From positions 35,836,001 to 35,900,000 of the forward strand of contig OZ287759.1 in NCBI GenBank assembly GCA_965649765.1: a stretch of DNA of 64,000 nucleotides, in the 5' to 3' direction. A program made the position numbers and the translations under genes. Below are positions 208 through 37,410 of the stretch, piece after piece. Origin of the DNA: Bispira polyomma (taxonomy: Eukaryota). Below the pieces are notes generated by a model. That model saw only the letters and a list, made by a program, of their open reading frames with translations, made no database searches and was not told the origin of the DNA. The first letter of the stretch is position 1; the number at the start of each line of letters is the position of its first letter.

Positions 208-298
208 ATGGGGAGATATCTCTATATCTGTTTTTTGGCAAGTTAGCATCTAATCTGGCAGCGTTCATGGTCATCCCTGGCTTTTTTCTGTACAATTG
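208..298 (-). CDS. PTPN4: PTPN4-like exon, start of PTP domain: QLYRKKPGMTMNAARLDANLPKNRYRDISP(Y)
   Basis: 91 nt, ctgcag|CAA...CCAT|gtaagt. Contains the KNRY pTyr-recognition loop and QLYRKKPGMTM as in PTPN4. Confidence 0.97.
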
Positions 299-5508: not shown

Positions 5509-5578
5509 CGTTAGGCCTGACGACCAACACCAACTCTCCCGAGTGTCGCTCTCTAGACGCACGAATGAACATCACCAC
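5509..5578 (-). CDS. PTPN4: PTPN4-like exon, PDZ end: VVMFIRASRERHSGELVLVVRPN
   Basis: 70 nt, ttcag|GTG...ACG|gtaagc, phase 0 to phase 1. VV.FI.AS.ERHSGEL.L.VRPN motif. Confidence 0.97.
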
Positions 5579-29843: not shown

Positions 29844-29936
29844 CTTGACATTGAAGCCGAAACGCCCCTGTGCATCTGGTTTCATTTTGATAGTGACTAG
29901 ACCTTGTGAATCTGATGAGTAGGCATTTCCATTGGG
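29844..29936 (-). CDS. PTPN4: PTPN4-like exon, start of PDZ domain: PNGNAYSSDSQGLVTIKMKPDAQGRFGFNVK
   Basis: 93 nt, ttttag|CCC...AAG|gtgaga, phase 0/0. LV.I.MKPD..GRFGFNVK is the PTPN4 PDZ carboxylate-binding loop. Confidence 0.96.
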
Positions 29937-32672
29937 CTAAAAATAAAAAACACAGGCAAAAAAACTATATGAGGTGTAAAAAGAAGAAGAAAAGAAACCA
30001 TTTGAATGTCACATTAAAGGTAAGGGTGGAATGAGCGGTCAGTTAATCCCCAAAAGAGTGGTTCGGCTTGTGGCCCGAGTTGAAAACGGGCAGCCGTCTT
30101 ACTCGCTCAGTTTACTTCTGACACACATACAATACATTAAACATAAACTTATATATATAATTAGACATCAAAACTTACTATTTTCCCCAATAACCACACC
30201 ACCCCTCTCTTTAGTATTTACAATTTATATTTCTTACAGTTGTCAGAAAGCAGTAAAACAACGACCTCATTTTGGTTAGGGATAAAAATTTTTAGCGAGT
30301 ACTCAGTACCGAATCGCAAATCACCTAGCGAGTACCCGGGCCAATATTCCGGATGGCTTACAGCCTTTATTAAAACACATTCCAGTCTGCCCTTTTTGGG
30401 GCAGACCTATTGACAAATATAAGTCGTGAAAATTTTGTTCACCTTTTTTTGGTAATATACAGAAACATGACAATCATTGGGATAGGTAGAGGATTGTTTG
30501 GTTTATAGATCACGTATCTACCATGCCCAAAATTTGTGTGAAGTTATCTCAACATTAATATTACCATATATATGTATGCATATAGTCAACTTGATTATCT
30601 ATACATACAACATTCCCTGCGATTAATGAACAGTACTTGACACAGGAATTTAATAGAGTATCAAGTATCACACAAGAAGAACTCCATTTACAAAGCATCT
30701 TCTCTTTTTTATCACATTAATTGAAATAGAAAACCTTCTTTGTGACTCAACATAGAAATCTCTTTCTGAGTGAATGAATCTTTGGGATCATATTCACAAA
30801 CGGTCTTAGACTCTTGACTTAGACCTAAGCTTAACATTTATGTCTAAAATATTTAAGACTGTCTACTGTTAGTCTTAGTGTTCAGAATAAAGTTAACATT
30901 ATAACTAGAGATTGTTTCTTACTATCACTAAGACCGACAAGACCAAAATCTTAAGGTGAAGACTAAGTTAAGACTCTGGGATTTCTCGTAAATACAGCCC
31001 AAGTATTCCTTAATATACAAACCTTTTTTAATCATATACCGGTTCCGCTCTCGGAAGCGCCCAGGGGCAAAAACGACAAAAATTCAAATAAGTTGGGGGT
31101 GGGCGTTTGCGAGAATGGGTCATTACGCGAACTAATTTTTCGCTTCGATCCGTATAAACACTATAAAATGACATAAAATATATCAAAATCACCTACCGGT
31201 ATTTAGGTATTTTAAGGGGGAAAGTGTAAATTATTCAAAACGTACTGTATTTGTTTTTTGTCATATACATACACGTACACAATTTTGTTTTCAAGCCCAC
31301 TGACATTTTCCTCTTTGTATATTTCAATCTGGTTTTAATTGATGCTGTCTTTTCTACAGAAGGACCATATTTAGTTCATCTGACCTTTCATACCTGCCCA
31401 GCACCACACGAAAAAAACACATTGCCACAATTGAGATACACCCCTCATTCAGAAAAACTATTCATTCCATTCAAAGATATCAATCAAATTAAAGAAAAAG
31501 CTGGTGAGCTGACAGAAAAAGAAGTTTTCCTCCATCCATTAATAGAGGTCACCCAACAAACCAGGCTAATAATTATACACAGAGCTCTGCCTTATTTCAT
31601 TTTAATCAGGCGCAGCCTGATATTGTTTTCATTCTGAAAAGGGCACTGCCATCTTAGAAAATATATAAGGCCTTCATAGATTGGTTGGAAGCAGTCTTAA
31701 CCTGGCCAAACTGATGGGTGTCAGATTTATTGTTATCAGGCAAAGCCTGGGGCCTGAGTATACAGTGGCCACATCAATGTTAGTATATTTCACACTGTGT
31801 CTTTTTTAAAAGACAACTCTTGTTCCTCTTTCTGTTTTTTACCTTGTAAAGTAACTTGACGGGTGGAATATTTAATAAACAACGATAACAAATCTGACAA
31901 TTTATATTTTCGACATTAGACACAAAGGAGAAACAAAGTGAATGACTAAAAAGAAGTAGTGGGAGTTTTCACTCGGAAATTACACACCAAATGTCAACTT
32001 TCTTTTGTGGCCAAAAATGATGTAGGACCTTTAACCACAGGACCTAAAACCCGTCAGAAGAAACGGGTAAATGTGTACAAACTGTAAAGGTCCCTAAGAC
32101 GTTAAAAAGAGAAAACAGCAGCTGTCTCACCATGCGTTTTTTTTTTTTGTACTGAATATCTTCACATGTTCAACTCTCTCTAATCTTAGTCTAATATACC
32201 CTGTTCTATCTTATACTGTAACAAGATCAGCAAACAGAACAAATTTTACAGACAAACAATTGTGTAGCAATAGTTTTCATAATTATATACATGTAGTTAG
32301 CAATTTTATACTGCAAAACGATCAGCAAATAGTGTCCCGCTTTTTCTTTTATCTTTTGCGTGCAAGGAAGAGATCTAAGATCTGACTAGATATTCCAGTT
32401 CCTCACTTAAAGCTCTATCAAAATTAATGGTAAGAAGTATAGGCTATTACTATTGATAAGGAAATCTATTGGCAAGATTTTTTTAAAAATTTTTTTGATA
32501 GATACAACCCACCTGATATATTATTATTACACAAAGGTATTAACAGGAAAGTGGTAAATTCTTATTTTTTGTTCCCCAATAAGAAAAGTTTAATTTGTGA
32601 CTTCAACTTTGGTTTAGGAACAATTGCCCTCTGAAACTACGCATGTCTTATAGTACACACTGCATGCATCTG

Positions 32673-32914
32673 GGCTGGTATTCTCGAACGTATACTCAGC
32701 TCAAACTCATACTCAACTCAAATCTGGATTCTCTATAACTCTGGATACAGCAAAGATAACCAAAATCTGACTTCATATTTGAATTCAGGGTTAAAAGCTC
32801 TATTAAAATCAATGGTCACAAGTATAGGTTATTTCCATGTACAATGATTTTCACATAGCTTGTATTTGAGTTGAGTATGAGTTTAAGCTGAGTATACGTT
32901 CGAGAATACGGCCC
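32673..32914. mobile_element. Harbinger-like MITE with long TIRs
   Basis: About 50-bp TIRs GTATTCTCGAACGTATACTCAGCT.AAACTCATACTCAACTCAAAT, with CTG on both flanks. Decayed relatives near 32380-32460 and 57900-58030. Confidence 0.85.
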
Positions 32915-33978
32915 CTGAGTTTTACTTTAAAAGTTATTTACATTTTTATCACCAATTACCAAAACTTATTTTCCTTCTTTTGGTCTTCTTCAATGGTCTA
33001 TACACTGCTTGCCTGGTAGTTTTACAGGTTAAAATTATTTTTATGGATTTATATTACATGTATAGCAGTAGTAAATGCATATATTTCTTTTTTACCTTAG
33101 TCTTAAGACATTTTATGTGCCTTGTGTATTATTCTAAACTTCAAAAACTTAATTGTTCAAATTTTAAGCGAACAGAGCAAGTGGCACGCAGATAATCTTT
33201 AAGAAAGTCCTTTTATTTTTGGTATGGCAGGTATGTAGGTGCATGTTTAATTCTATGTGATAAATTAGTAATTTATAGTAATTCAATACTTAAATTATTT
33301 GAATTAAAAAGCTGCACAAAGGAAGCCACAACAAAAACAATACTGAATGTTTTTGTTTAACATAAAAGTTCAGATAATAGAGGTTCTAGACTACTAAATG
33401 ATAACTTTATATAACACGGGTACACAGTCACTTATTTAACAATATTAACAACTAAACTGTCACACGTTAAACTAATTTACAAACCATGTTTATAAATATT
33501 TGTTTATACTTAATTCTCAAGAAAAACGCATACGGTAATATTTACTGAAGTTCTCCTTGTTAAAAAGCTTTAGTTTTTTTTTGATAACAGAAATCTTTTT
33601 AGTGGTTCTGAAAAGATTTTACAGTCGGATTCACATACTTTCAAGGCATTACACCCAAAACAACTTGCAATTTGAGAAGCTTTAAGGAAGCATTTAAACT
33701 TGGGACATATAAGATTGAATCTGATATCAGACAAGATTATATAATATATCTCAATTGTATAATGTTTAAAGTACACAAAATTAATTAATTAATTGTGTTA
33801 ACTTTATTTAAAGTCCTAAACATTTCTAGTGAACACAAAATAAATATCTGAATGTAGATAAAAAATTAAAAGGGTTGTCTATGCAATGTGAGACTTAAAG
33901 ATTAATCAACCTTTATAACACAAGGACATCAGAATTTACAGAAAGTAATTCACACATTTTCACAGGACTATTATTCTA

Positions 33979-34177
33979 GGTTTCCATATTGGCAATGGGC
34001 GACAGCAATCAAGCGACGGCAATCCACAATTTTTAGGTTTTCGCCACCAGAAGCGAAAAAATTGCCTTGCATTGCCTGCCAACTATCAGCATTGTTTACA
34101 TTGAAACAACAGATACTTCTAAATCAATCAAATTGCCATCGGCTGAGGTGCCTCAGAAAATTGCCTACATGGAAACA
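33979..34177. mobile_element. Probable MITE
   Basis: Inverted termini GTTTCCATATTGGCAAT / ATTGCCTACATGGAAAC, with internal GGCAA/TTGCC repeats. Confidence 0.55.
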
Positions 34178-35289
34178 TCAACTTAGTCTCTCTATGTTTC
34201 TTTTATATGTTCTCAATGAAAGAAACTGATCAAGTTACCAAATTTACACAGAATTTATTAAGTAATGAACTGAGCCTGTTTTTAGCACAGTAAAGACTTC
34301 ACGGGCCAGGACAAAAGAAATTCCATTTGGGTTTCCCAAAAAGTGCCTTCAACTGTAAAAAGTGAATATCATTAACTTGACTGAACAATAATCACTTCTT
34401 TCACTAACGTCCCCCCCCCCCCTCATCTTCATTTTCTAAAAAGCCCCTGAAGACATAATACTATAAATATATTCATTCTTACAAAGTTATGACAAAGTTT
34501 GCTAAAGCCTGATCTAAATATGAAAGAATGGTTTTCCTTACACAGAGCTGAATATTGACAGACATTTATATTGTGACCAAATATGAGCTTGGTGTTGGTA
34601 TATGTATAGTCTTCTTCTTTGAACCATTTTAGCAAAGTATGGTTGTTTCAACAAATGACATGAAAGATATAAATTACGCCATAAAGATTAAAAAGATAAG
34701 AGGCTATTTGATAATTTGGCCCACAGGCTATTAAACATACCTATATTATGCCGGCTATTATACTTACCAGTATATACTTAAGACTACAACCACATCGGAA
34801 ACTGATTTATAATGTGATTTCTGTGTCTATAAAGTTTAAACCCTATTAACTTTGAACCTCATAGGACTTACAAGGTATTCTAGTTAATATAGGGTAAAGA
34901 TTAATGGAAATGACAGATTCAACTCCATATTTCACAAAATGTTTGAGGAAAAAGAGTTTCCACTACAGTGGGAGCTACAACAATGCTAAATATACTTAAT
35001 CCCACAAACTATGTAACTGCTAGCACACATATACTGCTGTTTGAATTAGAATTGGAATTTAGTAGGGATTTCTGTCACTTTCAACAACAAGGTCATATTG
35101 CAATGGGCAGATTCAATGGTTAAAGAAACCAATGGTCAAAAGCCACTGTAAACCACTGTAAACCACTGACCTTCTAACCACCCAAAGGCCATTACAACCC
35201 ACCACACAATGCTATATATATTATGCCCTAAACTTCTATTATGCTCCGACTTATTTCAATAAATTTCTTGTAATTTTTTTTAAACTTAC

Positions 35290-37410
35290 AATGACTCGGC
35301 CAGCAGTCAATACTGCATCTCTGAGCATATTGTGACTTGGAAAGATGCCACAGTTTTTGACCTCTCTGTACATTTTGGGCTTTAGTTGACCTATTTGACC
35401 TGTGGTGTAGTATTCCATACAACAATCCTGTAGCTGTAGTTTAATGTCAGTATCATCTCCACCACCAGCTGAACTACACACTGAAGAAGAACCACTGGCA
35501 AATGTCCTCTTGTTCTTACAAGACGGAGAATGGATGAAATTGATAGGTTTTTGGGGCTTGGCGTAGATTCCAAACACTGTCCCTTCACCGATGTCATACT
35601 GCCTTAGCCTGACACACCCTGAACATGTGTCTGTCGTGTCAAGGTCAGCGTCCACACAGGTGTCCTTGACTGCTGCATATTTAGAGGAGGAAGACGACAA
35701 TACAGAGGTGGGAGGAGTCTGTTGATGGACGACGTTGGGGTGGTTCTTAATGACAGTAAACACCTCAGTCATATGATGCCTTTCATCCTCCTCAACTTGA
35801 CTAGGACTACAGAAAGTAGTTGTAACGTTGCTTCTCACATCAGATGAGCAGCTTTTACTCCGTCTCTTCAGGGCAATGTTATTCTCCCCACTAGAGGTGG
35901 AGTCAGAGTCACCACTACTATTATCTACCACCACAGTCTTCACGGGACGTTCTCTGGACCTGGCATTGCGGTGTCTTTGAGCTAAATGTGACCTTGAACT
36001 TGGCCTTGACAACCTTCCACCGAGGTCGCCTGAACGCTGCTGCTGTAAGTCTTGAAGGTACAGGTTGCTACAGATACTCGATCCGCCAGCCGATTGGCTC
36101 TTTGTGTTATGGTCTAATACTTGTAAGATCTGGTCAAAGTTTTTGCTACTAATTCGAACCCAGTTTTCGCCCTGTTTATGCAACGTATCCCCTGACTCGG
36201 TAACCACTGGGATCTGTCTCCTCTTTGCCTTCCTTACATGTACAGTTTTGTGGGCCTGTTCAGAATAATCAGGCAAATGTGTGTGGGCCGGTTCAGAATA
36301 ATTAGGCAAATGTTTATGGGCCTGTTCAGAATAATCAGGCAAATGTTTATGGGCCTGTTCAGAATAATCAGGCAAATGTTTATGGGCCTGTTCAAAATAA
36401 TCAGGCAAATGTTTGTGGGCCTGTTCAGAATAATCAGGCAAATTTTTATGGGCTTGTTCAGATCTACCGGAGACACTAGACTTGAGTGCGATGTTGGTGG
36501 ACTCTTTGGTCTGTTTCTGACTGAAGTCAATCTTCTCTATAGCATACTTAGGAGAAACTGACTTACAAGATGCCTGTAATACTGCTGCATCTGGCCCTGA
36601 ATCAAAGTAGTTCCCTCTATAATCTAGGGAAGGAGAGGTTTTAGTGGTCGAGAAGGAGCGTAACTTGACATGGCCCGGTGACTGAGGGAGGACACGGATC
36701 ATAGTCGGTGGCACATCGCGTCTATAGGATTCTCTACTTAACGGAGAAGTCATCAACTTCCTGTTTTCTTCGGAAACACTCGTCGACCTTGCACTGTCAG
36801 AACTCAGTGTTCGCTGATGGGGACGAAGTATACGATTGTCTGTCACGTGACTAGAATTATTCCAACCTTCAGTGTAACGATCTGCCACTCTAAACTGTTC
36901 CGGGTTTTCTGCACTGGAGCGGCGGTAATTCGCATTGTCCTTCTTTGTAAAGAATGGTTTGTATTTTGGAAAATTGATCGGCAACTTTGAATCTGTCTGA
37001 TCTTTCCCCTCCACATGCTCATGAAAGCCAGACTTTGTTTTCCTGCCTAGAACAGGGCTGGATGTAGCCAAAACGCGGCCACAATTAAAATCCCGATTTC
37101 GAAATCCATGGCCCACAATGGGACTTGGTGGTGGTGGTGGCTGGTGTGAGTGTACGGAGGAGGAGGGATGATGAGCATGAGACACCACATCTGCTGGCTG
37201 ATGATGAACTATCCTTGGCACTGGCTGGTCTGGAGGAGGAGGTAACACCAACGCATTCTCCCTGGCAACGAATCCAGGACTGGGTGGATCTGATCTGGAT
37301 CTATTGGATGAGTTTCCATCCCAGTCGGACTCGTAACAACTGTCTTGCGACATACTCATTGTGTTGTGTAGTAGTGGGCCTGTGCTGTCTGTCACTACCA
37401 AGTTATACAT
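35290..37410 (-). CDS. Large intronic exon (707 codons), candidate alternative N-terminus or cassette of the PTPN4-like gene
   Basis: 719-aa ORF 35251..37410 on the host strand with coding-like GC content and an in-frame 33-bp repeat. Consensus donor ATT|GTAAGT at 35290/35289 in phase 0, matching the phase-0 PDZ exon at 29936. Confidence 0.75.
36247..36462 (-). repeat. Coding minisatellite, 33-bp unit x6.5 (SEQAHKHLPDY)
   Basis: Direct reading. The unit length is a multiple of 3 and the array is in frame within the 719-aa ORF. Confidence 0.95.

Follow-up and report, generated by a model that had tools for sequence, protein, structure and literature searches.

A giant intronic open reading frame in a PTPN3/4-type phosphatase gene of Bispira polyomma as a candidate first coding exon of a FERM-less isoform

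What is an open reading frame (ORF) of some 700 codons doing inside an intron of a conserved phosphatase gene, and which protein, if any, does it help to build? The question is posed by a 64,000-nucleotide stretch of the Bispira polyomma genome (contig OZ287759.1, positions 35,836,001 to 35,900,000; hereafter the window). The initial annotation had pointed to a 719-residue ORF on the host strand, between the linker exon and the first PDZ exon, and we could confirm it: a minus-strand ORF of 719 codons begins at ATG 37410 and terminates with the stop at 35251, within a 747-codon frame free of stops, in the 19.4-kb intron that separates the exons at 49547-49361 and 29936-29844 (Table 1).

The host gene has the layout FERM, linker, single PDZ and single classical PTP domain. 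Its FERM exons fall outside the window, past its right edge, where FERM_C matches at C12:35907477 (E 1e-13) and 35906264 and a FERM_M match at 35918810 are found upstream on the same strand. In PDB the PDZ domain best matched PTPN4 (2e-21) and then PTPN3 (8e-18), with the next family at 2e-9. The PTP domain, located by PF00102 matches at C12:35832466-35834839, has PTPN4 as its top single-domain phosphatase match in PDB, and the exons with its catalytic motifs are present (KNRY, WPDHG, an intact HCSAGIGR and the Q-loop). With FERM, a PTPN3/4-like PDZ and a C-terminal PTP domain all found, the gene is, as judged from its sequence, of the PTPN3/4 (PTP-MEG) type. Since the exons flanking the intron are both in phase 0 (the end at 49361 and the start at 29936), the usual FERM-PDZ-PTP form can be made without any part of the intron.

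Table 1. Features of the host gene and of the giant intronic exon, in window coordinates.
Feature	Position	Strand	Remarks
Linker exon 1	50060..50857	-	End of FERM-adjacent region and Ser/Asn-rich linker
Linker exon 2	49361..49547	-	Phase-0 donor in both species
Conserved non-coding block	37995..38130	-	72% identity, upstream of the exon
TTCAG/TT element	37708..37720	-	~305 nt upstream of ATG 37410; ~330 nt in the orthologue
Earlier-proposed phase-0 acceptor gctcag/CAT	37428..37436	-	Weak; without usable counterpart in the orthologue
Upstream in-frame ATG	37408..37410	-	Weak context; M-Y-N versus M-H-N, 10/11 nt alike
Likely main start, ATG 37359	37357..37362	-	ACA-ATG here, ACG-ATG in the orthologue
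Giant exon, coding part	35290..37410	-	707 codons from ATG 37410, 690 from the better-supported ATG 37359
Coding 33-bp minisatellite	36247..36462	-	Encodes an 11-residue LPxY unit in 6.5 copies, against a single copy in the orthologue
5' splice site GTAAGT	35284..35289	-	Phase 0; kept in the orthologue as TCA/GTAAGT
Intron read-through to stop	35251..35289	-	12 codons here versus 3 in the orthologue
PDZ exon 1	29844..29936	-	Phase 0 to 0, strong acceptor; predicted splice partner of the giant exon
PDZ exon 2	18158..18301	-	Best PDB match PTPN4 PDZ, E 2e-21
PDZ exon 3	5509..5578	-	Host exon
PTP-domain start exon	208..298	-	KNRY motif; remainder of PTP past the left edge of the window

An ORF of this length could in principle be a chance opening, a transposon remnant or an assembly artefact, and it has no Pfam family or fold; none of the three public sequencing runs that contain the stretch is on record as RNA. 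A chance ORF is excluded, because the longest open frame reached 187 codons after shuffling of the intron (300 shuffles) and 218 after shuffling of the ORF's own letters (2000 shuffles), never near 719. The same three runs contain 97% of the words of the stretch, and DNA and protein searches found the ORF to be single-copy in the 1.035-Gb genome, with weak additional matches confined to its internal repeat. Its GC content is 43-45%, against ~34% in the surroundings. In line with the earlier view that the product does not resemble a transposase or reverse transcriptase, no Pfam match rose above the cut-off and no transposase or reverse transcriptase homology appeared; a multi-copy or transposon origin likewise found no support, in copy number or in homology.

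The strongest argument comes from a second species. Searches of 5.8 billion clusters and of 1.84 billion representatives returned a single true homologue, P0001/P0002, on two near-identical contigs of ENA assembly ERZ22147071 that are probably haplotypes. The orthologous ORF has 658 codons (L006 10031-12004), and its contig carries linker exon 1, linker exon 2, the ORF and PDZ exon 1 in the same order as the window, with a dozen non-coding blocks between those exons common to both. In this comparison of two species, the ORFs share 59% amino-acid identity over ~625 aligned codons, with identities of 69, 74 and 44% at codon positions 1, 2 and 3, and the 20 gaps in their alignment leave the reading frame open throughout. 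We obtained a dN of 0.34 and a dS of ~2.4, hence a dN/dS of ~0.14, a rough value because dS is near saturation, although substituting the dS of the linker exons (~1.2) would give ~0.29, again well under 1. From the orthologous intron position, the low dN/dS, the codon-position pattern and the frame-keeping gaps, we infer that the giant ORF is a real coding exon under selection. The constitutive linker exons gave dN/dS values of 0.11 and 0.08, and by this measure the giant ORF evolves faster than the ordinary linker. Purifying selection against an orthologue seen on two haplotypes, together with synteny, largely refutes an artefactual origin, which we regard as the most improbable of the readings considered here. 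The syntenic intronic ORF with a dN/dS below 1 that the initial annotation had proposed to look for in a relative thus exists, with synteny on both sides.

The head encoded by the ORF had also been called lineage-specific, which fits its presence in one other species only among the protein and metagenome searches. With phmmer against the 1.84 billion representatives, the other 25 matches fell only in the repeat region (residues 285-423); a profile search with a three-sequence alignment of the ORF gave no further homologue, and the JGI metagenomes gave none.

We then consider where the coding part ends. The previously described ATT/GTAAGT donor is indeed there, in phase 0 after codon 707 and 12 codons ahead of the stop. 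The donor of the orthologue lies within one codon of the equivalent place, directly after the last conserved block, and protein similarity ends at the donor in both species, while the position of the stop differs and the tail behind the donor is not conserved. Were selection to act on the residues Val-Ser alone, codon usage would put the chance of finding the same letters in both species at ~0.004. The next host exon begins in phase 0 with a strong acceptor in both species and, given also the conserved phase-0 donor, splicing from 35290 to 29936 is a strong inference from phase and conservation. Internal GTAAGG and GTGAGA sites are common to both species as well; these were set aside as protein constraint because the codons concerned encode conserved H-V-R and D-V-R.

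The behaviour of the 3' end bears on a quite different possibility, a nested gene whose unspliced, single-exon transcript would be read to the stop at 35251 and yield a disordered protein of 700 residues without a phosphatase. In both species the ORF has its own ATG and its own stop, and AATAAA (window) and ATTAAA (orthologue) hexamers occur ~1.0 kb past the donor. Chance alone, however, would produce such hexamers in 1.5 kb at 33% GC, and it is the perfect in-phase donor, not the stop or the tail, that has been conserved. We therefore hold a nested gene to be quite improbable.

At the 5' end, a run of ~30 identical residues starts at the Met of ATG 37359, which has an A at -3 in both species, and by this comparison ATG 37359 is likely the main start. 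The frame does run for 707 codons from ATG 37410, as first described, but the better-supported start shortens the exon to 690 codons. The upstream ATG is possibly conserved too. The phase-0 acceptor gctcag/CAT that had been proposed at ~37428 does exist; it is weak and has no usable phase-0 counterpart in the orthologue. By an acceptor model trained on 14 host sites, of which two themselves score low, the two phase-0 candidates of the window (37428 and 37494, the latter inside a 22-bp tandem repeat) score -0.3 and -0.2, under 12 of the 14 true host acceptors. Upstream of the conserved block, the orthologue offers in phase 0 only a GAG (-5.3) and an AAG (-6.7), both with poor pyrimidine tracts.

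These acceptors bear on the choice between an alternative start and a giant cassette exon. The latter would require a phase-0 acceptor between the upstream stop and the conserved block: the donor at 49361 would join a weak, regulated phase-0 acceptor (37428) and some 710 residues would be inserted into the full-length linker. In both species the flanking exons are in phase 0, and no stop interrupts the frame 5' of the first ATG for 28 codons in the window and 16 in the orthologue. Regulated cassette exons frequently carry weak acceptors, and a weak acceptor would suit a regulated exon here. Against this stand the orthologue, in which the AG-CAT aligned to the 37428 site is out of phase and the phase-0 AGs are those just given, and the finding that conservation sets in at a Met whose context suits a start, and not at an acceptor. 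A cassette is accordingly unlikely, and we favour a FERM-less start over it because the phase-0 acceptors are weak in the window and are not conserved in the orthologue. Joining of a longer head by way of a phase-1 or phase-2 acceptor, from a small upstream coding exon or a microexon, would be consistent with several conserved blocks upstream in the intron and with a moderate phase-1 acceptor at 37466. No upstream block, however, combines a coding pattern with conserved splice sites at both ends, and the phases of the candidate acceptors differ between the species, so that we consider such a head very improbable.

If translation begins within the exon, a promoter should lie in the intron. The TTCAG/TT element, which recurs in the orthologue, could act as the acceptor of a non-coding leader exon or as an initiator-like site. 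A point against an internal start is that the 300-nt leader contains six upstream ATGs in the window and eight in the orthologue. The conserved block upstream of the exon (37995-38130) is a candidate promoter or leader element. Rfam searches over 30000-39600 gave no match. Further non-coding blocks in the PTPN4 introns have 70-84% identity to the orthologue (48162-47978, 44926-44876, 41439-41338, 39221-39143, 38959-38922, 34402-34314, 32051-31863, 24455-24357, 22359-22215, 21321-21139 and 19704-19613), and the one at 39221-39143 retains a perfect run with TGATTAATGA. These blocks are shared even though synonymous sites are largely saturated, and they are candidate enhancers or promoter elements.

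Several other features were noted in these introns. The 22-bp tandem repeat (window 37478-37543), just 5' of the ORF, includes the stop that closes the frame upstream as well as one of the phase-0 AG pair. G exceeds C unusually strongly on the sense strand over window 38001-44000, upstream of the giant exon, with a skew of ~0.07-0.28 per kb against ~0.05 elsewhere. At window ~49300-49250 the 3' end of this gene's linker exon 2 is present a second time, followed closely by a phase-0 GTCAGT donor of its own; no such copy was seen in the ~100 nt after the exon in the orthologue. Intronic minisatellites lie at 56832-57606 (17/34 bp, 45 copies) and 53188-53330 (19 bp, 7.5 copies). In the second species, the intron with the orthologous ORF contains a multi-copy element several kb long, together with a satellite array of 169-bp units (L007 1260-5938, L022 2650-6940), and single satellite-like units match window 46231-46040.

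The protein head encoded by the exon is predicted to be mostly disordered (69-75%), with 14% Ser, a net charge of +14 and no hydrophobic segment, and AlphaFold2 modelled it at a mean pLDDT of 29.6. Pfam searches with the ORF, its halves and the orthologue gave sub-threshold matches only, one of them on the repeat, and the best score in the ESM Atlas was 0.80, under the level of a lead, with nothing for residues 575-707; thus neither Pfam, the ESM Atlas nor AlphaFold2 assigned a family or fold. The conserved parts are short blocks, namely the first 30 residues, a basic, kinase-docking-like stretch at ~230-245, a basic cluster at ~390-400, an amphipathic helix at ~415-435 and a Cys-containing, beta-hairpin-like block at ~585-635. 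Motif matches within the head are leads only. The polyproline runs singled out earlier (LPPPPDQP, QPPPPPSP) are present, but belong to the less conserved parts of the head. The coding minisatellite expands the one LPDY motif of the orthologue to six LPxY motifs.

Altogether, we consider that the ORF is probably (at a probability of about 0.68) the first coding exon of an alternative, internally started PTPN3/4 transcript that lacks FERM and would encode ~1,120-1,140 residues, a length counted exon by exon with the exons not joined. This reading, which the initial annotation had put first, gains support from the absence of a conserved phase-0 acceptor, which favours it over a cassette. A promoter inside the 19.4-kb intron, possibly with a short non-coding leader exon, would drive the transcript; translation would start at ATG 37359 (or 37410) and the donor at 35289 would be spliced to the PDZ exon at 29936. 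In the product, a largely disordered head of ~690-707 residues would precede intact PDZ and PTP domains, with FERM and the normal linker absent. The phosphatase would then lose FERM-dependent cortical anchoring and FERM-linked restraint, like cleaved PTPN3/4, and the conserved motifs of the head (basic clusters, the kinase-docking-like stretch, Ser-rich phospho-sites and the Cys-rich block) could re-target or regulate the enzyme. By analogy with these forms, the isoform would likely be a phosphatase freed from its cortical anchor and re-addressed by its head.

Precedents exist for parts of this scheme. Removal of FERM from human PTPN4 makes the protein cytoplasmic, and cleavage activates the enzyme (PMC5554198). 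Two of three PTPN3 isoforms have a truncated FERM, and the location and role of FERM-less human PTPN3 forms are reported as unknown (PMC10185773). Of the two axon functions of Drosophila Ptpmeg, only one depends on FERM, and the protein thus has FERM-independent roles (PMC9880076). The host gene shares FERM, linker, PDZ, PTP and HCSAGIGR with PTPN3/PTPN4 (PTPH1, PTP-MEG1) and Drosophila Ptpmeg; among the proteins searched, however, no described homologue of the 690-residue head turned up, and we know of no described member with it. FERM-truncated PTPN3 isoforms and the calpain- or trypsin-cleaved PDZ-PTP bidomain share the outcome proposed here, PDZ and PTP without FERM, but they lose sequence, whereas the isoform of the window would exchange FERM for a head encoded by a conserved exon. 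Our literature search did not turn up the isoform proposed here. There are thus precedents for internal starts and for FERM-less PTPN3, and what is new is the long, conserved and selected head.

A different comparison is with the giant ankyrins, in which a single exon of several kilobases, in an otherwise ordinary gene, codes for disordered sequence that carries short conserved motifs and lies between folded domains. Their giant exons are internal cassettes, whereas the exon of the window more probably encodes the beginning of the protein, and the two are not similar in sequence. More speculatively, this lineage might repeatedly provide cortical and cytoskeletal proteins (PTPN4, filamin, Cav-beta) with giant, disordered, motif-bearing heads through intronic promoters. 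The isoforms would then form a coordinated programme specific to cell types, and the PTPN4 head would be a new targeting module in place of FERM; we rate this a doubtful extension.

The mechanism itself, an internal start with an alternative first exon, is ordinary. The locus indicates that multi-kilobase coding exons without a database homologue can hide in introns of familiar genes. If the favoured reading is true, it would amount to a genetically encoded uncoupling of a PTPN3/4 phosphatase from its FERM anchor, with a new, selected targeting region of 700 residues. With the location and role of FERM-less PTPN3 reported as unknown (PMC10185773) and FERM-independent roles described for fly Ptpmeg (PMC9880076), an isoform that replaces FERM naturally and is conserved would be a useful test case.
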